Assembly (NCBI GenBank): GCA_907165135.1
Contig: OU015568.1
Coordinates: 9,114,001 to 9,178,000 of the forward strand
Reading direction: 5' to 3'
Length of the DNA: 64,000 nt
Origin: Oikopleura dioica
Lineage: Eukaryota > Animalia > Chordata
The notes under the pieces were generated by a model. That model did not search any database and was not told the origin of the DNA. It saw nothing but the letters and a program-made list of their open reading frames with translations. How positions within the stretch are numbered: the first letter of the stretch is position 1; each line of letters begins with the position of its first letter. The position numbers and the translations under genes are program-made. Below, piece by piece: positions 5,421 through 21,882 of the stretch.

Positions 5421-6146
5421 TTTTCTTGTTGAAAGGTTGTTTGAAATTAGAATAATTGTTTGTTGAGTTTGTATGCTTCCGAAGCGGACGAAGCAAAAGT
5501 TTTATAATCCGAGAAAACAGCGCCGGGAAATGGCGCGCGAGGGCGGAAAATAGCAAGCGCCCCAGCTGGCCGAGGTCGGCCAAGCTCGCTCGAGCGGTAC
5601 ATCAAAGGAGATCAGAGCACAATCAACAAATTATTGGGTGAAGGAGCATCGGGCCTGCCCTTCTTTCTCAGGTCAGGAACAAGGAAATAAACATCCTGCC
5701 ATGGTTTTTGAAAATCATTTTTATCTAAGGGTGTAAACGTTTTGGAATCAAAAAATGGATGAAATAATCGAGAGTTATCATCCGGGAATCTTATGTTTAA
5801 TATAAAAAGTCCTGAAAAATTACCAGCTTATGGTTATCTATCTAAATACTCACATTATATAAGTAACTAATACATACTTTATTCGAGACAGCCACTACCT
5901 ACTAGGGTAGTAGAATTTAAAAAAATGAATCTTACTTGGAAATAACGACAGGCGGATAAGTCCACTTGAAAGTCCTCCCCACTTCCGGCAAAGCAAAGGT
6001 GAGAATTTTCGAAGTCTAATCCTTATTTATAAAAGTGTTATCCCCCTTTTCTGCGTGGCAATATACAACAAATAAATACACATCTTTGATTTTTGTGGTC
6101 GCGAGACCTTTCAAGTGGAATCGACGGAAAGGCGAAAAAGAGCAGA

Positions 6147-6625
6147 GGTAGAAGTCTCCAATTGTGGCAGGTCGAAAAAAATTTTTTTTTTTCTGATTGG
6201 CTCATCTGAAAGAGCTTCTCAAACTGTATAAAAAACGTTTTTAGAGTCTGCTCAAATCTTCGAAATTTTCGACATTTGGACTTGATAAAGGTTGAAATTC
6301 CGAAATTTTAACTGCTCATAGAGCAAAATTTTTCCATAACAAAATTTTTTTTTTATTTTTTTTTGGAATCTCTATAGTCGAATCTATGTGCTTGCGAAAA
6401 TTGAAGCAAATCGGGCAACATTTGGGCTGTAAAAATTTTTTGAGGATTAGTTTTGCACTAATTTCGCAAATACAAAGCATATACTTTTATTAAATTACAA
6501 ACTACAAAAAGTAATCAAATAGTGCTCTGAGGTCACTTGAGGTCATTTGAGGTCATCTGAGGTCATCTGAGGTCATTTGAGAACAATTTTTTTGCCGTTA
6601 AATTACATTTTTTATTTTTTTAATT
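6147..6625 (+). repeat. Left terminal inverted repeat (~480 bp) containing five 10-bp TGAGGTCAYY units
   Basis: By-eye alignment to the reverse complement of 19285-19763. AGGTCA occurs at 6530, 6540, 6550, 6560 and 6570. Confidence 0.92.
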
Positions 6626-7276
6626 TTGAAAATAATAATTTTGAGCAAAAATATTGCTCATTTGATTTTGAAAATTTTTTGTTTCAATATCGATCGACGG
6701 TGAAGTGTACACATGCGCTCGCGATTCCGGAACTACCTCGCTCATTAATGATTATTTAATGGATGCATCAATCAAAATCACAGTATGAAAAAATTTCCAA
6801 ACTAATTTCTGGCTGGCAGTTCACTTCGAGAAAGTTAATTCTGTGAAACACACAAAATTGAAAGAGAAGAAGAGAAAGCTAAGAGAAAGATTGTTAATAA
6901 TTTTCGATACCAGTGACAGGTATACTAAATATATATATTTATTCTTAAAATTATATAAGACGCTTGTTAATTGCAGAAAAATCAAAAACAGAAGAAATCC
7001 TGCCAACGACTGACTCCAAAGAAAGTAGAATTCAAACGAAGACAGAAGGTATGCTTTAAAGACTTCCCCACGGTTTTGGCCTAGATGGGCCTCGCGCAGA
7101 AAAATTCTGAAAAAACAGTATGTTCGGTGGTCCTTCTTATACTTATTTATTATAATTATCGTTTGACTTATTTTTTAAACAGATATATCTATTACAAGTC
7201 TAAAATTATAAAAGGGAATTTAGGCCATTATAATTCCCTCATTTTACATTTTTCCGTAAATCGGAATAGCGCGGAC

Positions 7277-8487
7277 CAGAGTTACAAATTTTGTGAGCTA
7301 GCTGAGGTGAGCTATATGAGCTAGATGAGCTACAGCTCAGCTCAGCTCAGCTCAGCGATTTCGAGGTGAGGGTCAGCTCAGCTCAGCTCAGCTTAATTTT
7401 TCTGAAGAAAGCAAGCTCAACTCAGCTCAATGGTTCTTCGAGAAAAGTCAGCTCAGCTCAGCTAGCTCAATTTTAACCTCGACTTAGCTAGCCCAGCTCA
7501 GCTCAGCTTGAAAAATTGTCAGCTCAGCTCAGCAAGCTCAGATTGAAAAATCATCAGCTCAGCTCAGCTCAAGAACTAACAGATAAACCCCAGCTTAGCT
7601 CAGCTCAATTTTTCGACAAAATCCAGCTCAGCTCAGCTCAGCTCAGTTGTTTTCAAAGGGGTCAGCTCAGCTCAGTTCAGCTTAAAAAAATTGTCAGCTC
7701 AGCTTAGCTCAAAAATTTTCAGATAAGCCCAAGCTCAGCTCAGCTCAGATGCTTTACAAGGGGGCCAGCTCAGCTCAGCTCAGCTCAATGGTTCTTCGAG
7801 AAAAGTCAGATCAGCTCAGCTAGCTCAATTTTAACCTCAACTCAGCTAGCTCAGCTCAGCTCAGCTTGAAAAAATTGTAAGCTCAGCTCAGCTAGCTCAG
7901 TTTGAAAAATCATCAGCTCAGCTCAAAAACTAACAGATAAACCTCAGCTCAGCTCAGCTCAAATTTTTCGAAATAATCCAGCTCAGCTCAGCTCAGCTCA
8001 GTTGTTTTCAAAGGGGTCAGCTCAGCTCAGTTCAGCTTAAAAAAATTGTCAGCTCAGCTCAGCTCAAAAATTTTCAAATTAGCCCAAGCTCAGCTCAGCT
8101 CAGCTCATTTTTTCGAAAAATCCAGCTCAGCTCAGTTGCTTTTCAAGGGGCCAGCTCAGCTCAGCTCAGCTTAAAAATTGTCAGCTCAGCTCAGCTCAAA
8201 AATTTTCAAATTAGCCCAAGCTCAGCTCAGCTCAGCTCATTTTTTCGAAAAATTCAGCTCAGCTCAGTTGCTTTTCAAGGGGCCAGCTCAGCTCAGTTCA
8301 GCTTAAAAATTGTCAGCTCAGCTTAGCTCAAAAATTTTCAAATTAGCCCAAGCTCAGCTCAGCTCAGTTCATTTTTTCGAAAAATCCAGCTCAGCTCAGT
8401 TGCTTTTCAAGGGGCCAGCTCAGCTCAATTTCGACCACAGCTCAGCTAGCTCAGCTCACAAAAAATTTTCAAAAATCTGCAACTCTG
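7277..8487. mobile_element. Non-autonomous hAT-like element filled with a (GCTCA)n complex satellite, nested in the large transposon
   Basis: TIRs CAGAGTTACAAATTTT / AAAATCTGCAACTCTG. 8-bp TSD GCGCGGAC (7269-7276) versus GCTCGGAC (8488-8495). The interior is CAGCT pentamer blocks with 358-bp and 132-bp higher-order periods. Confidence 0.85.
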
Positions 8488-10122
8488 GCTCGGACCGAGA
8501 ATTAAGATCACTTACGTTCGTTACACCTTTAATAGGGATGAACCTGAAATTGTCAACAAGGCAATCAAGGCCATCACGGCCAGCATGGCCATCAAGGCCA
8601 TCGACCCGACCAAAAACTCGACCTAGTCGGAAATGGTGGGGTTTATATTGGCACCGAACGATCCTACCATGGATTTTTTTGATTTGATCGGTGGTGGGGT
8701 TTGGTCGGTGGGTGGTCGGCTTAAGTCGGTTTCTTTGTGTTTTTCGTTTTGACCGATTTTTTTCATTTCTCTCTGGCGATAAAAGAAAAAGAGATTGTCG
8801 ACAAGGCCATCAAGGACATCATGGCCATCGAGGCTATAAAGACCATTTTAGAAATCAGCAAAAGTCCCTATAACCTGAATTCAACAACGCCCTCAAGGCC
8901 ATCAATTCTAGAAAGTTGCGGGTTTCCTTTAAGACAGGCGCGGAGCGCACACCCGCTTTTTCTGCTTTCTGATCGTTGATTATTGCTTCAAAAGTATAAA
9001 AATTGATCTGCTTAGTTAAAACCATGGATGCTCGAAAACAATACCTTGGAAAAATCCCACGATTCCTTAATTCCTTCGAAGTGTCAAATGATGGCTCGGG
9101 GACCATGGCGAATCTTACCTTTATGATGTCTCGTGTCGTGCAAAGCCAACTCCCTGAGTTTGCTCCAAAGCAAATGTACAGGGCATTAGAAGATATATTG
9201 GAAAGAACCGAAGCCACTATGACTGTCGAGTCGTTTTTCGTTTTCCATTTTCAGGGCGGGCCTGTCATAAATTGCTCTTTTGAATGTGCGGTACCGCTTA
9301 TCATATGAATTTTCGATTATAATCGGGATCATGGCTGTCGAATTCGCGTCCTATGATCTGTCAAAAAAATTTTAGTGTGCGAATTAATATTTACGCGTCG
9401 TTTTTCTATCTTTCGCGTTCGTCTCGTTCAATCATCTTCAGAAAGCTTTAGAAAAAAGATAATAGAAGTAAGCGCTTTAAAAGTCTCCAAAATTTCTCTA
9501 AAAATTAATTCTTTTTCTTTTCGAGTGACGACAGTTATCAAATAACCAGCTCTGATCTAGACGATCGAGAAATTGCAAAATTTATGGTTAAGAGGCCTCT
9601 TGAGCTTGCTGTTATATTTAAGACGATCTCTTCGAAAGAATGGCTCAGATTAAAAGCTGAACGATTGGTTAAAAGTTTTTTCTTCCAAAAACTTGACAAG
9701 CCTTCAAATTGGAATCAAATATCTAAAGAAACAATAGATGTTTTGGAAATGACGAGGTGTTTAGACTACAGAATATATCAACTTCATCGTGCATATGATG
9801 AGCTACGTCTCCAACAAAGAATAAGACGATCTTACAATCAAGGTGGACGACATCAGGGTTATTACGAATTACTGTGTGGAAAATTTGTCTCTCTCACATC
9901 GTTGTTTCCAAAAAACTTGTGGTAAAATCGAATTATATGATGTGGAGTTCATTTTTCTTTTTTAAGTCGTCGTCGTGGATGAGAAGTTCTGTTATGATGT
10001 CAATGTTCTACGATGTTTATCCTTTTCTTTCACTCTTTCCTTATTTTTTACGTGATTGTTACCCTTAAGCAATTTGTTCGATAAAATCTTGGATAAGGAT
10101 TAATTGTTAAAGTATTTAGACG

Positions 10123-13100
10123 ATGTCCGAGTTTGGCGTCTCTATGATGCCTGTTGAACCACCACCAGATGATTTATGCGCACTTGGTCCAGCGCCAAGC
10201 GTCATGAATATCGATTCTATTGATGCTGTGTCTAACTATGACTTTGACCCCAATGAAGCTCCTGTTAATCTTCTTCAAGTACCAAGGTTTTTATTCGTTC
10301 AAGATTGATTGAATTAAAGTTAATTTTGCATTTCAGTGTTCTTGATCTCGAGAGACTTGATAATCTAAATGAACCGCTTGGCACAGCTCCGTCAATTCTT
10401 AATATTGACACCATTTCTGTTTATTCCCACGATGAGGTTCAGGCGAATAACTCTGAACTGACTGATTTAACGGAGGTTTTTTATGGTCGAGTTCCAAGTG
10501 TGATGAATCTTGACCAGGGTTTCGAAAAATTGGCAGCCATGCGGCGGCGAGGATTTATTCATACTCCGCGCGCCCTTCGCTTACGGCCTCCATTCATTTT
10601 TCGAATCCACGCTCTGGCGGCAAAGCCAGCCGCTGGCCGCTGGATTCCACTGGAGACCGAATTTCAGCCTCGGATAATGTAAAATTCGGACTGGGTCGCG
10701 TTAACGCAAGATGAATCACCAAGTGGCCGCTGAACCCTGGCGGCCAGCGGAGGTGGGTCTCTAAGAGGTGGAAACCAAAAGAGTATGAGTGGGTTGTGGC
10801 TGCCGCCTGGCCTCGTATTTTTCGAGACCCTGATCTTGACCATATAAACACAATGAACGAATGCGTTCCAAGTGTACCGTCTTCATCAGATTTCGACATA
10901 ATGAACGGATGCGTTCCAAGTGTACCATCTTCATCAGATTTCGACATAATGAACGAACGAGCGCCTTCTGTGCCAGATATAAGTTCTCTTACGATTGATG
11001 AGGATTCAGAAATTCAATTATCGACGTCTTCAGTGAATGAATTAGGAGCGGAAGCAGATTGCTCTTCGCACCTGCAAAGTTATGGTCATGAAAATGTGAG
11101 TGAGGATATACAAGATTCCGACTACACTTACAATCATGTCAACGGGACAGAAATTCAAAATTCGATGGACACACCGGAGAATCAATATCTGCAAGATCAC
11201 GAAGAAACGATGGAAATGATAAAACAATCGCAAAATGGTCACCTTGAGGCGCTTACGAAAACTGAAAATGTCACACGATCACGCTTCCAAAAAATCGCAC
11301 GCAAACCAAGCACTCATAGACCAAGTCTTCTTGAGTGCAGTCGGACGAAGAATTTTCCATTAACCAGAACAAATTCTTCAACTCGTTCCCTAAGAAACGC
11401 GTTCAAGAAAGAATCAAAAGCAAAAACAACAGGCTTAAGGCAAGCTCTGGCAAGAAGTAGGCTCCGCGAGATCGCCGCATCGGTCGAAATCACCGATCAA
11501 CGGTCTGCAGACTCTCTAAGAGAGCTTAGTTTTCTATCAATGACTGATAAACTTGCCACGAAAATAATCAATGATGTGACAAAGATAATATCGTCAAAGA
11601 AAAAGTCAAAATTAGGTGATATTCTCTCAAAGGTATAATCGTTTTTTTTTAAGAATTTTCTAACATTCTTAAGCTGAAATCTTCTCCCGCTTTTACGGCG
11701 AAAGAAGCAGAAAAACTTTTTGCAAAGTTTTTAGTTAAAGAGCTTAATACAAAAAGGGTGGTAGGCGGCCTTTTGAACAGACCTTCAAAGAATGAAAAAT
11801 ATTTTACCTAAAAATTTTTCTATCTTTACTTGTCTGCCCAAACGACCGCTTACAACCCAATAGATACAATGGACCGACGTCTCGTCCATCGATTAAATTG
11901 TCCAATTATAAAGGTGATGGGTCCTAGCAGCGCTCAGGCCCGACCGTTCAGAGTATCATTTCAAAATCTCGATAGAGATCTCGGCGAGTTGATCCAGTGG
12001 TAGCACACCCCGGCCGGACGCGGGAAACCGTTGTTCAATCCCAGGACTTGTCTAGCTTTTTAGCTTGAGCGCTGTTAAAATCCATCAAAGGATACTCTTG
12101 TTGTCGTAAATGTGGAAATAATTTTCCAACATCTTCTACTGCCTCAGCATTTCATGATCATGTTAAAATATGCTCTGGTCGAGTCTGCACAGGAAAGATA
12201 ATAATTATCAGGATTGTCTAAGTATGCTGTGTTCTTATCAAAAATAAGATTGCAAAAAGCACTTTTCTTCTTTGGATTTATACAATAATCACCTTGGTAA
12301 CTGTACGGCTTCCGTCACAAGCAAAGACTATGATGTGAAGCTATTGAAGAGAAAAGATGCCTACAAATGCTGTGGAAGTCGTCCAACAAAACAGAATGGC
12401 CGGGTAAAACGACAGCATGAGATCAGACAATGCGTTTTGCCAACCTGCTTTATATGCTGCCAGAGGATCCCATTAGAGCATATTGAAGACCACGTGAGTA
12501 ATCACAAAGATGACTTCGGCTCCGGTCTAGTTCAAGCTGTTAGAGAAGAACCTGTCAGGGTGCAAAAATCATCTGAAGAGCCTTATCTTCTTGAAAATCA
12601 AGAGGCACCGCATTCATCAAAAAATTTGCCTACAGTGTTAACGAAAAATGTCGAGGCAAGTGAGCAGATGCTTTTTATGCCTCAAGAAGTCGGGATTCTA
12701 TCAAAATCAACGATAGAGCATTTGGATGCTGACGTTCGTCTCGAAAAAATATCACGCGCCTCTAGAGAAGAGGAAGGAAGTGTTGAACAGAACCAAGAGC
12801 AGGAACTAAACATTCAGCCTCGCTCTATTCTTAAAAAGAATAAAACGACGAATTCTGAGGAAGATGACTCTGATCCTGATTGGATAGATGAAAATCCCGC
12901 TGAGCGGCTTGAACTTGAAAAAGAAAACTTGATAGGTGCACTTGAAGAAATTGCCAGTACATCTTCCGTTCCAAGTATTTTGGAAGCTCTGTCAACTTTG
13001 AAAACAACCGAGGAAATTAAAAGTGAAATGCAAAACCTGAGTGAGCAGAATCAAAATACTCTCATCAAAATGCAGCTTTTACCAAGGTTTGTGAAGAGAA

Positions 13101-16100
13101 AATTTTATAAAAGAATAGAACAATTTATAAAAGATTATAATTCTAGTGAAATAATGAAAAATATGCTTGACAAATCAACTTGGAAAAATGAGAACGTGAT
13201 TTTAAAAGCGGTATTAAAAGAAAATAATTCGCAAGAAAGAATTCATGTTCTTTCCTCGACATTTGGAATTAAGGACCGGTCAAAAAGTCCAAAACAATAT
13301 TGATAGAGTAAATGGAAAAACACCCTATTATAAATATCGGAAAGTTGAGCGACCTCGCTTTAGAAAAAGAAACTGAAGAAGCTTGCAGATGAAAAAGAAT
13401 CTGGGGAAAATTATGCCAATTTCAATCAGATCAAAGCCGCGAATATTTCATTAGATTGGATTATAAAATTAATGAATTTTACGATCTCCATCATGTCTAT
13501 AATCCTATATTTGTTTCGGCAATAGACGCATTTCTTGACGAGAGAGCTTTCATTGATCCGAGTCAAAAGAAAGCAACTCTAAGGGAATCCTTAATTCTTG
13601 ACCGCACTGTCTTGAAATATCTTCGTGAAAAATGTGATACGCGAACCCATAAAATTGACTTGCTACGACCAACGACTCAGTCTCTGACCACTTCGAGAAG
13701 AATACTGAAAAAAACTCTTGAAGAACTTCACGCTGAATTTATTAGTGAATATCCACAGCTTACACACCTAACTTTGAAGGAGTTCAAAAGTATGACTCCA
13801 TTTTACTACATTCCGCCCTCACGTACAACGCAAGTTGTATGCGCCTGCGAGATAGGGTCTTAAATCGTGAATTATTATAAATTTATTGTCACTGTAATGG
13901 AAATCACACCATGATATGATTAAGACCATTTATTAGTCCTGCCTTAACAAGGGAACTTATGAGAAGGCTGCGCAGAGCCTTGGAAAGAAATTAGGACAGG
14001 AGACTCTTTTCTTAGATATCACAGTTCATCGCAGAATCCGTTAACAGGTCCTAACAAGATCTTGAGGATAAAAAAGCCCCCCTCCATAAGACGTTCCCGC
14101 ATTGGCAGGCTTCAATTTCAAAGAAATCTTGGAAAGGAGCACCTGTGCAACAACGGACAAACAATATTGTGTCACTGATCGTAAAAAGAAGACAAGTTGC
14201 TTTGTTCACCCAAAAAAATTCAACATCCTGCAGCGACTGCACTCACAAGAGTTGCGTTGGTCCGGATGAATTTATGGAAGACTTTGATCGAGAAATATTC
14301 GAAAAAGTCGTACAAATGCATCCTGACGAGACCGTTGCCTTTGACAGATTCGAACTCCTCAAAGCTGGAGTTAAAGCTGAGACAGCTTTTGTTTCTGGTA
14401 GCGAAACTCGCGGTAAAATGCCAATACGGCAATTCTTCGATCAGCTTAAAAGTATGACGAGAGAAACACTTGCCCATAGCATCGACAAGAGCAGAAATAA
14501 AGAAGATCTTAAAGTATATGAACATGGAGATGTTAAGCCAGGGAGTCTTCATCTTGAGCCGAGGGTCTTAAATTGTATCGAATGAATACGTCAAGTGTGT
14601 CTATAAGCAAGAACTTTCTGAGACCCGTGGAAAGCTTGACTACGCCTCGACGTTTGTTCTTCAAAATAATACTGCGTCACAGTTCGGGATCAGAAAATTC
14701 ATTAATTTCGCTTGGCTTGTTTACATGAACCCTAAAAATAGCATGAATATCTTCAAGCCGGGCGCCTTGGATTGAATTGTAACGTTTTAACGGCGGTCGC
14801 TCGATGGAATGAAAACGAAATACAAAAAATGCAATACTTTCATTTTCTTATGGAGAAGAAATTTGCCGGAGCGCCGATTGAGGCGGAAAAAATGATTGTT
14901 GAAAATTTTAAAAATCGAAACATAAATTTCACAGTCATTAACAGGATTTCTGAAAGGGTTCGAAAGGGTTAAAATTTGCATTTTAATGTTGACGATAATT
15001 CCATTATGGCTCGTCGGTAGGTAATGGTCTATTTCGATCTTGCGGATTTATAAGATCTTTGAATTTCCCGAACCCTGTTTTACATAATGCGAGCTCTGAA
15101 TTCAAATCGAGGGAACATTTTCACCATGCCATTTCAAATAACGATGGCCTGCGGAGAACTTATATTTTCAAAACCAGCCGCCATGGAAAAGGTATTTTTT
15201 CCGCGAAACTAATTCTAGAATTCTGAGGCCTCGTCGATGGCGCCCATAGTCACTGCGCTACCACGATAAAAAATGCGAAACTTGTAAATCGCTGTGGTAC
15301 TCTTGATGAATGCCTCGGATTCTTGAAGGAAAATGAGCAGAAGCTGCGGACAGAAGAAAAAGAAAAACGCGCAAAACAAAATTTTGCTGGGCGAGAATAT
15401 GCCATTCTCAAGAATAAAAATGAAGAGACCACGAAATCTTCCGTAAATCTCAACATACCGTCAATTAAATCGATTCGTATGATAAACTTCGACGCAGCAA
15501 GAGGAGCTCTTTATGCAAAAGACATAGTCTGCAGCTGCGATCTCTGTTCCAGTGGAAAAATTAGTCTCTGTGTTCGAAATTCTGGAAACACATTTTCCAG
15601 AAAAATCGGACAGAAAGACGGAACAATAATTATTGATAATAAAAATCAGCCTCAAAGAAGACCCGTCAATCTTCGAGAATTATCAAACAAACAAACAATC
15701 AGCGATTACGTCTACTCTGCAACAGATATTCAAGCTCAGTTAAGGGTTTTAACGACCGAACGTCATTAACTAAAACAGGGCTATATGCTCTAGAGAACCC
15801 TGATTAAGATTGCGCTCTTAAGATTAGAAAATACAAATAAAACAGTCAGTATCCTCTACCCTGTGGCCCGCCAAAGGTGTGACTCTAGAGCTTTAAAACC
15901 TAATTTTCTGTTTTTCTTAAGCGAAATATCAAAATCTTCTCTGAAAGCGGAAATTTCCAAAGTCCGGGGTCAAAATCGTTATCTTGTCCGAATTTAAAAT
16001 TCGAGAAACAGATTTTTGCTCATATCCTACATCTTCCGTCGGAAACATGACTCAAGGCACTTATAATGACCCAAGCCTTAAGAAACGAAAAAAAATTTGT

Positions 16101-16625
16101 GCACCATTATTGCTGTCATCAAAAGATGAAAACCACGCGGCACTCTTGATCGTTAATGTCAAATCTCGCTCAGTTACTGTCTATGATACAAATGGGGCTA
16201 TTGGAAATTATCAAAACGCCATTGATAGTTCGAAAAAAAAACTTCTTGATACTATTGGAAAAATTCTGAATGATCAGGGCCCTTGGAAGAAAAAACGCGA
16301 AAATGTTCCGCAAACGAATCGTGATTGCGCGGTCTATGTGCTCAACAGGTTAAAAAAAATCTTTAAAATTATTTGTTGCTTAAAATTATTTATAAAAATT
16401 ATTAAAGAATTGAGCAAGAATTCAAAGCTGGAACACCAGAAATAACATCGTCGAATATTCTTGAGATCAAGGAAAATCAACTCAAAAAAATTAAGTATGG
16501 CAATATTAATAAATACAGTTCATAAATTTAAGTCATTGGGTGTGCAATAAAACAACTCCATCAAAAAGAGTCGCACAGCATTCAAGTGAAGTCAATGCTG
16601 AATCGAAAAGAGTCCGTTTTTCCTG
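10123..16625 (+). CDS. Multi-exon Sola2-type DDD transposase with N-terminal repeats and zinc-finger-like motifs and a C-terminal Ulp1 (peptidase C48) domain; may start near 9584; possibly decayed
   Basis: Transposase-like motifs: TLEELHAEFISEYP..LKEFKSMTPFYY..VVCACE followed by a Cys cluster; LDYASTF (first Asp); IS/(D)NASSEFKSR (second Asp); YIFKTSRHGKG/LVDG (third Asp; HGKGxxDG is typical of Sola2); CSCDLC. Protease motifs: NHAALLIVNVKSRSVTVYDT...PQTNRDCAVYVL (His/Asp/Gln/Cys of C48 proteases). Confidence 0.72.
10515..10832. mobile_element. 318-bp hAT-type MITE inserted in an exon of the transposon gene
   Basis: TIRs CAGGGTTTCGAAAAAT / ATTTTTCGAGACCCTG (15 of 16 match). Perfect 8-bp TSD ATCTTGAC at 10507-10514 and 10833-10840. 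Removing the element restores VMNLDHINTMNE. Confidence 0.93.
10852..10975 (+). repeat. 48-bp coding tandem repeat (MNxCVPSVPSSSDFDI), about 2.5 copies
   Basis: ATGAACGAATGCGTTCCAAGTGTACCGTCTTCATCAGATTTCGACATA is repeated almost exactly. Confidence 0.85.
11983..12053 (+). ncRNA. tRNA-like (Gly/Asp-related) degenerate Pol III unit in a probable intron of the transposase gene
   Basis: 71 nt. GGCGAGT pairs with ACTTGTC (7-bp acceptor stem, two G-U pairs). A-box-like TGATCCAGTGG, B-box-like GTTCAATCC, T5 run at 12057-12061. Anticodon and T stems are imperfect. Confidence 0.55.
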
Positions 16626-16816
16626 ATCTGGAAATATCACGATTACATTTTTTTTCCTCGTTGTTAAATACAAATATTCCTAATTGTTAATTCTTGTTTT
16701 TGAAATTCTCTTTTCTGTGAGTAAAAGAAAGGCAAAAGAAAGAAGAAATCAAATCATTGAATTCAGAATGCTTATAATTTTTTTTTTATTGCCCGTGTGA
16801 CTATAAAATAAAACAG

Positions 16817-18760
16817 CCATTCTTCAATCAAATCCTGAAACACAGAAGATATTTAATATTTATCATCGATTCAAACTGTCTGTATGTTCTCATAACGGAA
16901 CATGGGTGATGCCTCGACACAGGTCAGAAAAATGAGCGCAATATCTATGTTAGAAAAATGGAAAACTAGTTAATTGAAAAATTGTTTTCTCCATCTTAAG
17001 CGTAAAATATAAGATCGGCTGCCCGTTTAGCGCCCCGTCGTTATATATTTTTCAGAGACCCGTCTAATCTGAACGATGAATTATATTCTTCGATTTTGTA
17101 GAGCTCCGACTTCTTCACTTTTAGTCTTCTATTTCACTTCTACTTTCCTTTTATTTCTAGTCTGAGTTTCAAAATAAATCTTTAGATTTTTATAGAGGGC
17201 TTTGAAAGAGTCGCTCTCATTCCGAGACTTTGACCAAGTTATCCCATTTTGATATTTTCAAATTGTTTGTATAAAAGAATAGGCTTTGATGATCATAAAG
17301 CAAAAATAATAAAGATAAAATCATTTACCGTTCAGATTTGACGGGTCTCTGAAAAAACGGTCATGGCGGGGCGCTAAACGGGCAGCCGCGCTCAGCCGAT
17401 GTTCTATCCATAATATCCATGTTCTATCCTTAATATCATACATTAGTTATGGAGTCTTTATGGTTCAAAGGGCATGAACGAGAGTGCTGGCGCCGACCAT
17501 GTTTCTTCGGATACGAAAAACAAATTTCCTTCTCGGAGATTCACAGGACTGTTTGAATATAAAAAGATGATAGAACAGTTAGGTCTACGCGGAAAAAATA
17601 CTTTAATGGGGGCGTCCTTATGGAGAGATAATTTTGAACACATTTTCTTAAAGCTCTTGATATGCCTGTTCAGAATCGCGAATAAACATCATATCGGGGG
17701 TATTGGGAATTCGAGAAAAATTCGATTTTATGGTTTGTGGGCCTCTTTTCGGCGGCCATCATATCTATATCCCGATGCCCCCGATACAATTTTTAATCGC
17801 GATTCTGAATGAGCATCTTGAGATCTTTAAGTAGACGCGTAAAAATTTTCAAAATATGAGGGTGCGACCTGCTTTTGGTTTTCCGCGGAGTCCCCTTATA
17901 TATGTGTTTCATTAGCTAAAGTAAGAAATTATTCAAACACCACTTTAGATAAAATATTTCGGAAAACACAAATTAAAGAAAAAAAACTGGATTATTACGT
18001 CATATTCTGGTGCCTGTTTAACTGAATTAGCAGTCCTGATGAAAGTAGGACAAATCTGCGATGAGGAAAGAAGACCAATTCTTCAAATCAAGAGCCGGAA
18101 TGCCTGGAACTATGGTGAAAATCTACCGGAGAGATTTTTATGCGAAAATTGCCATACAAATTGTCATTCGCGCGTCTCCGGAACAGTTCTAGTCTATGCT
18201 GGACACAACAATATTCTGAAGGCATCAACACTGGCATTCCAAGATGTTGACCTAGATAAAGCAATTCAGGATAGTTCTTTCTCTATCTAAATCGTCGCAA
18301 GAACATTTTTTTTATCTATGTCCGATTATAAAGATAATTAACAAAATAAAAATAAAAGAACTTTTCAAAGGTTTTACATAGAACCCTTACATCGCTGTTT
18401 ACGAATGCAAGAAAAATCCTCTTTGTTCAACCTTTTCCACTTGCTAAGCCGCTTAGAACAATTGAAGAATCAACACAAAAATGGCTCAAGAAGATATTAA
18501 GTGCAAAAGTACCTAGCTTAGCTAACTATTATCGAGTAAAACAGGAAGAGGTTTTCATTTAATTGGAAATAGAACTAAAAAATTGAATGTTTTTGAGTAC
18601 CGATTCTTCAGAAGCCTCAAACAGCATTTTTTTTCGCCAGATAAAGTTCATCTGAAAGACAATTATGCTCGTCAATTAATCGTCTCAATTATTCAGGTAA
18701 AATTGAGGATACTCATAGAAGCTTAGATTTAAGGACCCTGCCCCCGGCATCATTCTTTTC
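16817..18760 (+). CDS. SGNH/GDSL hydrolase-like cargo gene inside the transposon, spliced, with MITE-like insertions in an intron
   Basis: Block I-like YLIFIIDSN (exon 16817-16881, bounded by AG and GT). Block III-like VLVYAGHNNI. Strand motif KILFVQPFP. Block V-like FSPDKVHL (about 18631-18654). Confidence 0.55.
17014..17400. mobile_element. MITE with ~55-bp imperfect TIRs
   Basis: CGGCTGCCCGTTTAGCGCCCCG..TTTTTCAGAGACCCGTC (from 17016) is mirrored by GACGGGTCTCTGAAAAA..CGGGGCGCTAAACGGGCAGCCG (ending 17388). TSD unclear. Confidence 0.8.
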
Positions 18761-19284
18761 GAAAAATGGATATTAAGCAAACAAGTCCTTAAATAAAGAA
18801 TATTTTACAGTAACTTCAAATATCTTACTATCTGAAATCTTTGCCTTTTAAATTATTTTTAATAGAGCGTCGAAAAACAAATTTTAACAGCGAATGACAG
18901 TTATGCAGAACCACGGAGTCTTCCTAAACGAAAGAAAGGTATTTATAAACATGAAAAATATGGTCGAAATCCTCAGTGTTAAAGTTTCAGATCGTCAAAC
19001 AATCTTCTTTGACTGCTCTAAACTCTCTCTTATGCCGTCGAGAAAAAAAAGTAATTGCTTGTATCTTTATTTTTTTAAATTTTAAAAATATTAAGGAAAT
19101 TTTCATCGCAGAATGCCTGGATTTTCTGACTGAGAAGATTTTTAAAAGAAGAACAAAACGAGAAGGAACAAACACAACATGCCTCATTCTTTTTAGTTTA
19201 AAGTGCTTTTACATTTGCATCTTACACATATGCACGGTATAAAAATTATTTTTTGTTTTTAAAATTGATAAAATAATCGTTTTC

Positions 19285-19763
19285 ATGTTTCAAATAAATA
19301 AAAATATGTAATTTACCGGCTAAAAAAAGGTGACCTCAAATGACCTCAGATGACCTCAAATGACCTCAAGTGACTTTAGAGCATTATTTGATTAATTTTT
19401 TGTAGTTTGTAATTAAATAAAAGTATATGCTTTATATTTGCAAAATTAATGCAAAACTAATCCTCAAAAAAAAATTTTTGCAGCCCAAATGTTGCCCGAT
19501 CTGCTTCAATTTTCGCGAGCACATAGATTCGACTATAGAGTTTCCGAAAAAAAATAGAAAAAAAAATTTGTTATGGAAAAATTTTGCTCTACGAGCAGTT
19601 AAAATTTCGGAATTTCCACCTCTGACAAGTCCAAATCTCGAAAATTTCAAAGATTTGGGCAGACTGTAAAAACGTTTTTTATACAGTTTGAGAAGCTCTT
19701 TCAGATGAGCCATTCAGAAAAAAAAATTTTTTTTTCACCCTGCCACAATTGGAGACTTCTACC
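19285..19763 (-). repeat. Right terminal inverted repeat with four TGACCT units plus one variant
   Basis: TGACCT at 19331, 19341, 19351 and 19361, TGACTT at 19371. The remainder mirrors 6147-6625. Confidence 0.92.
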
Positions 19764-21882
19764 AGACCACAAATATTCCGCGCGAAAGAAGAAAGGAACG
19801 GTTGGATTGAAAGATTGAAAATTAGGAGGTTTCGCTTTTTGGTTCACCGCGTGGAGGAATTAAAGTTGACAGAAAGAAGCGGCGCTAGAAAAGAACGACA
19901 AGTGTCAAAATTATACGATAAAGTAGAAGGGATCAGCCCGGATTTTGGAATTTTAATTTTTGATTCTAGTTGCTAGATTTTAGATTTAAAATGAATAATT
20001 CAAAGAATCGAAGTCCAAATGCGAATCTTGAATTGAAGATCGATTTCTGATTGACTTCATAGAACGCTTACTTCAAAGCCAAAAATACAAGGGCAGTAGG
20101 TACCCCCAAAAATCCGTCTTCAGTACCGCCGATTATATTTTTCCGCTAAATCAACGGTCGATACAAAATGTATCTCTTCCCCTTTCAAGTGCCGTTTTTA
20201 GCGGATTAATTAGGCCACCCGCGATGCGCATCTCTCTGTCGAAGTCGAATTTCGCGGAAAATTCAGAACTTGCTGGTTGAAAATTTCAGGCTTTGGCTTC
20301 AGGTTCATCTTTATGGAAAATTTTTGGCAAACCGGAAACTGCACGTGCGTTTTGGAAATTGCTGGAAATGCTAAAAATTATCTGATGTCGATAAAATTTC
20401 AACCTCGAGGATCTCCTAAACCCAGGAGGCTTTTTCCAAGATTTCAAGCTTGAAAATTCCTCGTCTCCAAGAGCCCCAATCGTTTGATAAGATGCCAAGA
20501 AAAAAAAAGAGACCCGTGCGGACGATTTTCGCTCCATAAAGTTTTGACGATCACGCCGTTCAAAAAAAAGGTTTCTTTTTAATTTCGGGGAAATTTTAAA
20601 AGGGTGACATTTTATTGTCATAAAAACGCGTGTTGAGCGAAAGTACTAAGAGTAGTAAAGTGACAGGGAGGGGATTAGCGCGATGCGCACGAGATAAGAT
20701 GGGTGTAAATTTGTATCGAGAGTTTTAGTGATTTATGAGTAAGAGTTGATGATCTGATCTAATGATTTTCATCAACAGAATTGTAGTAGAGGTCCTCCTT
20801 TGAAATGGTCAACTAGAGAGGAGCAAGTTAAGCTGGCTCTGACTGCCCTAACGCTAACCCTAACTGTCAGAGTCTGGCAAAAGGAGCCAGACATTTTCAC
20901 ATGTTTCTTTCTTTTTTTTTAATTTACTTTTCTTACGCCCGGATGTATCTTCCCTTTGAGCCGCGCATCTTACACGCATCTTGTTGCCTCAAAGAAGAGT
21001 CCTAAGGGTAATCCCTCGGAAATGAAAAAGCAAACAGCCGTAGCTCATTTCCGCTTGAAGCCTTGAAGATCGAAGTAAAAGTAATAATTTTGTCCGCGTG
21101 AGCCTCGTTTGATCCTCGGACGTCCGAGTTAGCAGCTGCTCGATTTCTCGCGCCTCGCCACGTGGATTGAGGAAGGGATCAATCGAGCAAACTGAGTTTG
21201 ATCTCACAAGGAAGGAGTTTGTTGACGTTGCTGATCCCTTCAAGCAGCTAGTTATACTTGAACTGGCTGGGAAATTGAGTTTTTCAAAATGGAAATTTCG
21301 CTATTTTTGTCTTGCTATTTTAATCCAGCTCCTTTGAACAGTTCTTTGAGAGGATTTTCAAAGTCATCGAAGGGTCGATGGTTTTATTCTTGAACCCGAT
21401 TGTAGACAAAAAATGCTTATTGGACGTTTTCGAGAAGCCTAATTCTTGTAATTGATCCCTAAAATTCATGGGAGAGCGCTTGAAACTTTCAAGCAAGCTC
21501 TAAAAAGGGTACCAAACATTGTCTCCGACTTACTAGGCTGAATCAACAAATTATCGACCGCTCGTGGCGGCACAATTACTAAATTGAACGGGTCGTAAAA
21601 TCAAAACTCGATCTAATTCGAGGCGAGCGCCTTTGGCCAAGCCGATCACGCGGAAAATCTCACGTCGATACAATTTGTACTACTGCTCTTTGATCCAGTC
21701 ACTATTACTTCTTTGTTGTGGGGCTTAATTAGGGCGATCTTGATCCCTACTTCATCACTGTAAGATGTGAAACTGACGCTTCAAAGCTTCCCTGGAATTG
21801 TTCTGTAAAATTCCAGCACAGTAGAGTAGAGAACCAAATTGATACGGAGCTCGTTTTATTTTAGTCTTATGTACAGTTATAT

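Follow-up and report, generated by a model that had tools for sequence, protein, structure and literature searches.

Is the 13.6 kb of DNA that lies between two long inverted repeats on a contig of the chordate Oikopleura dioica a single transposon, and if so, what kind of enzyme moves it and which genes does it carry? The question is raised by a stretch of 64,000 nucleotides, here called the window (GenBank assembly GCA_907165135.1, contig OU015568.1, positions 9,114,001 to 9,178,000 of the forward strand), which belongs to the Nanopore-based assembly of O. dioica OKI2018_I69 (PMC8008620); the positions given below are counted from its first letter. The element in question spans 6147-19763 (13,617 bp). 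We consider it likely that it is an autonomous-type and very young cut-and-paste DNA transposon, similar to Sola2, which encodes a transposase with zinc fingers, a catalytic core with three aspartates (DDD) and a fused Ulp1 protease, together with an SGNH-like second gene.

Boundaries, copies and target duplications

Direct alignment of the two arms gave terminal inverted repeats (TIRs) of ~470 nucleotides with 94% identity, the left at 6147-~6620 on the forward strand and the right at ~19290-19763 on the reverse strand. A repeat search of the window, which also delimits the right arm, resolved them into three adjoining inverted-repeat blocks (6147-6593 versus 19323-19763). Both ends of the element read GGTAGAAGTCTCC and are bordered by the same three letters, AGA, at 6144-6146 and, as read off the right flank, at 19764-19766, as expected of a target-site duplication (TSD). 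The long inverted repeats that an earlier examination of the letters alone (the original prediction) had placed around 13.6 kb are thus confirmed.

When the assembly was searched with the left arm, exactly 12 occurrences were found, these being both ends of each of six elements: two on PAR, where the window lies, two on XSR, one on chr2 and one on a 2.9-Mb scaffold. The left arms of the six are 98-100% identical to each other. Five copies measure 13.6 kb; any two of the full-length copies are 99.85-99.96% identical, and any two of all six 99.5-99.96%, with just 6-20 substitutions per 13.6 kb between copies. The sixth (G000:C1:1226606-1237465) has an internal deletion of 2,732 bp, corresponding to window positions 11113-13844, by which the zinc-finger and pre-core exons of the transposase gene are lost; it has diverged furthest of all (99.55%), and its duplication alone is imperfect (TTA/TTT). 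The remaining five of the six copies are flanked by a perfect 3-bp duplication (TTT, CAT, TGA, AGA and AGT), with no obvious target consensus among the copies. A 4-bp reading of the duplication fails in all six copies, as it does in the related 2.4-kb element described below. Identity across the 13.6 kb shared by the dispersed copies begins and ends exactly at the termini, the flanks are unrelated between copies, and those of the window copy are single-copy in the assembly.

Because the six copies have their own duplications and unrelated flanks, chance, independent insertions of repeats around host genes and segmental duplication are excluded for all practical purposes, and the 13.6-kb element has recently transposed across a 3-bp staggered cut. 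The original prediction had taken the locus for a single mobile unit and had proposed a genome-wide search with the TIR to collect copies and define the TSD; the search yielded the six copies and a TSD of 3 bp. The counter-case it had named, that the two TIRs are independent insertions of a common repeat, is contradicted by the occurrence of the TIR only at the 12 ends of these copies.

Each TIR arm ends internally in ~5 tandem 10-mers of the form TGAGGTCAYY, found by repeat analysis at 6528-6581 on the forward strand and as a mirrored array at 19331-19374. These are candidate transposase-binding sites: the transposase would bind the termini and the subterminal 10-bp repeats, excise the element and reinsert it across the 3-bp staggered cut. 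The element is probably still mobile.

Beyond the six copies, the termini were found in the assembly only on a related, non-coding element of 2.38 kb (G000:C4:10707111-10709489), whose ends read GGGAGAAGTCTCTAATTGTGG with 2/21 mismatches to the 13.6-kb family. It is flanked by a 3-bp ATT duplication and is probably a non-autonomous relative of the 13.6-kb element. A solo end was observed at C3:2277347.

The transposase-Ulp1 gene and its relatives

The main gene (10123-16442, forward strand) has many short introns and an uncertain start. Its exons were placed by homology only, in searches run exon by exon or with database relatives. These relatives begin with a paralogue on chr1 (L023, G000:C4:5754001-5764000, minus strand), which has zinc fingers, Cys blocks, a DDD core and an Ulp1-like tail in the same domain order as the element, at 26-38% identity exon by exon. 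Unlike the element, the paralogue is single-copy and lacks both long TIRs and an SGNH-like neighbour, and its introns are fewer; it is perhaps a relative that has been domesticated or does not move. Its exons are longer, a single open reading frame (ORF) of 276 residues spanning the blocks of the first and second catalytic Asp (D1 and D2), with a GA-AG intron between DNAP and SEFKS. An exhaustive phmmer search with this core ORF against 1.8 billion representatives gave 4 matches, of which 3 were real, all of them from marine metagenomes.

One of these, P0003, is an intronless protein of 1461 residues with zinc fingers, core and Ulp1-like tail. The contig that carries it (L025, 5970 bp, ENA metagenome ERZ27290853) continues with a 203-residue ORF that has a signal-peptide-like start. 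Protein P0002 lies on contig L026, where one ORF of 370 residues extends from the D2 block, by way of HGKGRVDG and a CxC cluster, into GHAALVKINV of the protease. A profile search added P0011-P0013, and the further fragments (P0004 and P0011-13) come from TARA and other marine metagenomes, while searches of word indexes, with P0003 or the family profile as query, returned metagenomic fragments only and no named protein. An alignment of the window exons with L023 and the metagenomic relatives P0003, L026, P0004 and P0011-13 (alignment A5) yielded the conserved blocks [LFS]DY[GA]., [TA]QSEF, LTA, FH, [IL][ST]DN[AC]..EFKS and KT..HGK[GS].[VI]DG.H, each of which is fitted by the exons of the window.

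In order along the forward strand, the gene comprises several zinc-finger exons of the CxxC...HxxxC type with an acidic linker (12069-13300), which align to residues 287-401 of P0003 and to L023, and a pre-core exon (13393-13860) that ends in a 'PFYY...CAC' block and matches P0003 and L023 by tblastn (E 5e-5 and 4e-15, respectively). A Cys-rich exon upstream of D1 (14090-14564) is a 164-residue open frame in four of the copies. The core then follows in four pieces placed by homology alignment: the D1 exon LDYAST...ASQF (14635-14686), with LDYGSD, SDYASK and FDYANP in homologues; the middle exon NVLTAV...YFHF...NRIS (14758-14951); the D2-block exon NASSEFKS...KTSRHGK (15086-15191); and the exon of the third Asp (D3), which opens with G-LVDGAH(S) and continues through a C-terminal CxC...C cluster into the start of the protease region (15228-15745). 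The last exon (15948-16442) holds the Ulp1/SENP-type protease domain. Homology-guided introns are predicted at 14565-14634 (GT-AG, 70 nucleotides), 14687-14757 (GG-AG, 71 nucleotides) and 15192-15227 (GT-AG, 36 nucleotides), and an in-phase GT-AG intron at 15746-15947 (202 nucleotides) would join the transposase exon to the protease exon.

The protease domain with a His-Asp-Gln-Cys set, as originally predicted, was substantiated: the ORF at 15984-16445 matched Peptidase_C48 in Pfam with 32.2 bits (cut-off 20.7), and an alignment to human SENP1 places its motifs HAALLIV, VYDTNG and PQTNRDCAVYV on the catalytic His, Asp, Gln and Cys. Since transposase and protease share one uninterrupted reading frame in two metagenomic relatives (370 residues in L026 and 1461 in P0003), we regard the fusion of the two in the element as real. 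During transposition, the Ulp1 protease would have as its substrates SUMO-like conjugates of proteins from the host or the element. The anti-silencing role suggested by the original prediction gained no support.

Transposases of the Zisupton/KDZ type are also fused to Ulp1. Such fusions are likewise documented in Ginger1 and Mutator transposases (PMC2836005). The element resembles Ginger1, Mutator-like and Zisupton/KDZ elements in that one polypeptide holds both the transposase and, at its C-terminus, a Peptidase_C48 domain whose catalytic set is intact, but differs from them in its core, theirs being unrelated (integrase-like, MULE and KDZ), and in its duplications, which are of 4 bp or 8-10 bp in those groups. 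Pfam scans for the rve, MULE, KDZ and CxC families gave no match to the window exons or to P0003. The original prediction knew of no description of its combination in one Sola2 element. Among the papers searched, none contained both 'Sola2' and 'Ulp1'; Ulp1-fused transposases as such were already known, and the combination is therefore a variant and no new principle. The same applies to the element at large, for neither long TIRs nor Ulp1 fusions nor second genes are new to transposons. If confirmed, the element would provide a natural test of the importance of the Ulp1 domain for transposition.

The SGNH-like second gene

Between the transposase-Ulp1 gene and the right TIR, an SGNH-like gene of at least four exons was identified on the forward strand (17449-18700) by homology to a small family of O. 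dioica genes. Exon 1 (~17449-17560) carries block I (GDSQ), exon 2 (17949-18266) blocks II and III (SYSG and GHNN) and exon 4 (~18600-18692) block V (DKVHL), with exon 3 at ~18380-18535 between them. A 113-residue frame at 17949-18287 matches a 462-residue ORF on chr1 by tblastn (E 8e-13). This ORF is the gene chr1.g824 (P0005; L024:4521-5909, minus strand), which has a paralogue, XSR.g16540 (P0006), and relatives in other assemblies, and the family ends in a C-terminal domain of 235 residues with the blocks VVLGDSQ, SYSGC, GIGLNN and D.VHL. A profile of this host domain recognised exon 2 with E 6.6e-12 in the four copies in which the exon is intact and with E ~1e-8 in the remaining two; its match to exon 1 had E 1.2e-3 in five copies. 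The gene is present in all six copies, and exon 1, including block I, is open from its ATG through ...LLGDSQ in the five copies other than that of the window. On this sequence evidence an SGNH-like gene belongs to the element.

The SGNH identity given to this gene by the original prediction holds as far as the ordered blocks and the homology to the chr1.g824 family are concerned, and two results count against it. Pfam SGNH models gave no match to the element, and the AlphaFold2 (AF2) model of the host domain was poor, with a predicted local distance difference test score (pLDDT) of 53 and a best Z of 6.2 in fold comparison, so that the fold match is weak. Three fold-search lists, one of them from an unbiased scan of 48,161 chains, are nevertheless headed by SGNH/GDSL esterases, OatA/PatB and the OSK domain of Oskar. 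A sequence search of the PDB with the SGNH profile returned only spurious TALE-repeat matches and was set aside. Among known systems, the esterases in ORF1 of long interspersed nuclear elements (LINEs), such as ZfL2-1 ORF1p (PDB 4c1b, Foldseek rank 9), likewise place an SGNH-type domain on a mobile element. The version described here differs from them in being a separate spliced gene in a DNA transposon and in being closest to the cellular-looking O. dioica genes chr1.g824 and XSR.g16540. The chr1.g824 family itself consists of an N-terminal helical domain, a coiled coil, a basic low-complexity stretch and the C-terminal SGNH-like domain, a layout that resembles esterase-type LINE ORF1 proteins, and no reverse transcriptase adjoins it.

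The strongest alternative to be weighed concerns this gene, which could be a decaying host-gene capture of the Pack type instead of a working accessory gene. Consistent with such a capture, the stretch corresponds to the C-terminal domain of the host proteins alone, long introns containing inverted repeats interrupt it, and it has no counterpart in the paralogue L023 or in the metagenomic relatives; moreover, it is frameshifted at 17515 in the window and bears 2-nucleotide indels in two other copies. These indels, however, fall in homopolymer runs of a Nanopore assembly, the gene has its own ATG and the same strand as the transposase, and none of the block residues Ser, Gly, Asn and Asp/His has been lost, even though identity to the host family is only ~32%. 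We therefore regard a decaying capture as a real possibility, albeit the less probable of the two explanations, and retain the accessory gene as part of the proposed transposon.

Possible affiliation with Sola2 and the second catalytic aspartate

The name Sola2 refers to a group of DNA transposons reportedly treated by Bao et al. in 2009. Two published members, Sola2_DFa-2 and Sola2_PPa-1, have the blocks LMDFKEN and LCDFKEN at D1, FWSDGAKHFKS and WCDNARHFKS at D2, and YHGKSDVDRHF and YHGKSECDQHF at D3, respectively (Bao & Jurka 2013, PMC3627910), with FY.FVP...TD.CP.C upstream of them (PMC3627910). Compared by eye with alignment A5, the Sola2 blocks agree in order, in many residues (D-[FY]..., [SCT]D[GN]A..FKS and HGK[SG]..D) and in spacing, which is ~87 versus 83 residues from D1 to D2 and ~43 versus 37 from D2 to D3 in published Sola2 and the Oikopleura family, respectively. 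The agreement extends to the upstream FY...P...CxC/CxxC block, the 'PFYY...CAC' of the window corresponding to 'FY.FVP...C.xC' in Sola2. Sola2 elements are also TIR-bounded, cut-and-paste and large with room for a second gene, the Dictyostelid examples measuring 12-15 kb and carrying Fanzor as their second gene (PMC3627910).

As for the fold, an AF2 model of residues 860-1060 of P0003, built on alignment A5, had a mean pLDDT of 67 with core strands at 80-95. Its order b1-b2-b3-a1-b4-a2-b5-a3 is RNase H-like, and the three Asp are located where b1 ends, directly behind b4 and in the helix that follows b5. The best Foldseek matches of the P0003 core in the PDB were the PIWI domain of Argonaute (pAgo), retroviral integrase cores and IstA (E 1e-4 to 1e-3). 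The core is thus predicted to be of the RNase H-like DDE/D type, on a model of the relative P0003 rather than of the window protein.

Several results weigh against the reading as a Sola2-like transposon with a working enzyme. Pfam gave no match to the transposase core in any exon, in the paralogue or in full-length P0003, Peptidase_C48 being the sole match, and the phmmer search left just three real relatives and no named family at the HMMER level. The TSD of the element is 3 bp, whereas that of Sola2 is by definition 4 bp (PMC3627910). The splice junctions of the element are all predictions, because RNA reads from three bulk runs and one single-cell run of O. dioica gave only 2 partial reads on 12770-18769, in runs that may stem from another O. 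dioica lineage and are therefore no test of expression or splicing. The second catalytic Asp would require an unusual splice, and the window copy may be defective; both points are taken up below.

Part of this evidence has led us to consider whether the enzyme belongs to a separate, unnamed DDD lineage with only short Sola2-like motifs, either a sister of Sola2 or part of the DUF7869 group. Such a lineage would account for the 3-bp duplication, seen in 6/7 insertions, for TIRs of ~470 bp compared with 12-22 bp in the Dictyostelid Sola2 examples (PMC3627910), for the failure of phmmer to meet a named Sola2 protein among the 1.8 billion representatives, and for the DUF7869 clusters that appeared as language-model neighbours. 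DUF7869 (PF25273), however, had no HMMER match in the genome or in the proteins and is no more than a lead, and published Sola2 shares the residues, order and spacing of the three catalytic blocks and of the upstream Cys block. Besides, TSD length is known to vary within several other transposon superfamilies. A separate lineage is thus rather unlikely in our view. The element is best described as Sola2-like at the level of motifs and would not be filed as a strict member, because its 3-bp TSD and ~470-bp TIRs differ from the Sola2 definition and examples. It further departs from them in reading DYA/G where Sola2 has DFKEN at D1, and in its C-terminal Ulp1 fusion and SGNH-like companion gene. 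The Sola2 identity of the original prediction is accordingly kept for the motif blocks, their order and spacing, and given up for strict membership. Should the element be confirmed, Sola2-type enzymes would come to include one with a 3-bp duplication and a protease fusion.

Other groups were rejected more readily. CMC/CACTA, PIF-Harbinger and KDZ/Zisupton had no Pfam match on the exons or on full-length P0003, CACTA termini are ruled out by the GGTAG ends of the element, and a TWA target preference by the duplications TTT, CAT, TGA, AGA, AGT and ATT.

The proposed gene would contain at least 10 short introns, some of them non-canonical and one inside the codon of the second catalytic Asp. At D2 the relatives read ...RITDNCAREFKS, and the paralogue L023 reads ...RISDNAP-S-EFKS, interrupted by its GA-AG intron. 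In the window family, the exon ends with ...NRIS at 14951 and NASSEFKS restarts at 15086, with a piece of 131 nucleotides between them (14953-15083, forward strand) that has 8-bp inverted ends, AGGGTTCG/CGAACCCT, and offers no in-phase GT-AG borders. An Asp codon arises here only as G(14952)+AT or as GA+T, and it would thus require removal of 14953-15083 with the non-canonical borders AA..AC or AA..CA. The motifs of the original prediction were recovered on the forward strand as LDYAST, NASSEFKS and HGK-G/LVDG, with the exception of the 'D' of '(D)NASSEFK', since the adjoining codon is His. Splicing at the sole in-phase GT-AG pair (14968-15020) would leave 24 additional residues and this His at D2, and an alternative GG-AG model (14957-15093) gives ...RISESSEFKS. 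As the copies, all of which carry the 131-nucleotide piece, have moved recently, we infer that it is correctly spliced out. The piece was found only in the six copies in a genome search, and its predicted RNA fold, a closing stem with three hairpins, was no better than that of shuffled sequences (z 0.07); with no other genomic copies and no special fold, it was rejected as a miniature inverted-repeat transposable element (MITE) or tRNA-like unit.

The window copy differs from the majority of copies by an extra T at 10477, by an extra A at 14212, which is also present in one other copy (C3) and breaks the frame of the transposase in the Cys-rich exon, by a missing A at 17515, which breaks exon 1 of the SGNH-like gene, and by further small non-coding indels. 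It may thus be defective through 1-nucleotide frameshifts in both genes. All of these differences lie in homopolymer runs, and the frameshifts may be Nanopore errors instead of true slips.

A further possibility is that the six copies encode no active enzyme, D2 being His by canonical splicing, and that they were moved in trans or have only recently died. This would agree with the sole in-phase GT-AG model, which reads ...HNASSEFKS, with the failure to find RNA reads on the element apart from the 2 partial ones, with the frameshifts of the window copy and with the 2.7-kb internal deletion in one copy. On the other side, copies just 6-20 substitutions apart have intact TSDs, and the only other element in the assembly with these termini is the 2.4-kb non-coding relative. 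In addition, 11% of the introns of O. dioica OKI2018_I69 are non-GT/AG, with a median intron length of 49 bp (PMC8008620). Moreover, the paralogue L023 has its GA-AG intron two codons away, and the ...NRIS that closes the exon before the gap is directly followed by DN in the relatives. We therefore find an inactive enzyme unlikely and keep to the reading as an autonomous-type transposon. If confirmed, the element would provide a clean case of non-canonical introns in a gene whose product must work for movement.

The genome of O. dioica is among the smallest and fastest-evolving animal genomes, and an apparently active DNA transposon of 13.6 kb is notable in so small a genome; for this chordate model, which has no native insertional tool, it could become one. 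A bolder proposal would join all of the above into a live Sola2-related lineage with 3-bp TSDs, whose transposase message is repaired by non-canonical splicing inside a catalytic codon and which carries a SUMO-type protease and an esterase as found in O. dioica retroelements and some cellular genes. We regard this as speculative and improbable as a whole. If true, it would mean that unrelated transposon classes in a very compact genome converged on the same accessory enzyme.

The tRNA-like RNA of the original prediction was not recovered: ARAGORN found no tRNA cloverleaf in the element or in the whole window, and an Rfam search at E<=1 returned nothing except one spurious bacterial small RNA. 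Upstream of the transposase gene, ~1.1 kb of AGCTC pentamers (7328-8427) form a satellite with higher-order periods of 132 and 355 bp and small palindromes, and this AGCTC-rich satellite is partly common to the related 2.4-kb element. In the N-terminal region, a stretch at 10515-10832 lies between two coding-looking frames, the window-only extra T at 10477 being just upstream of it. A nested MITE-like piece of 373 bp with 72-nucleotide inverted ends (83% identity) was found by repeat search at 17016-17388, upstream of the SGNH-like gene, and a second MITE-like inverted-repeat unit, with 79-nucleotide arms at 75%, lies inside that gene at 17630-17848; the region that holds both is present with few substitutions in all six copies.

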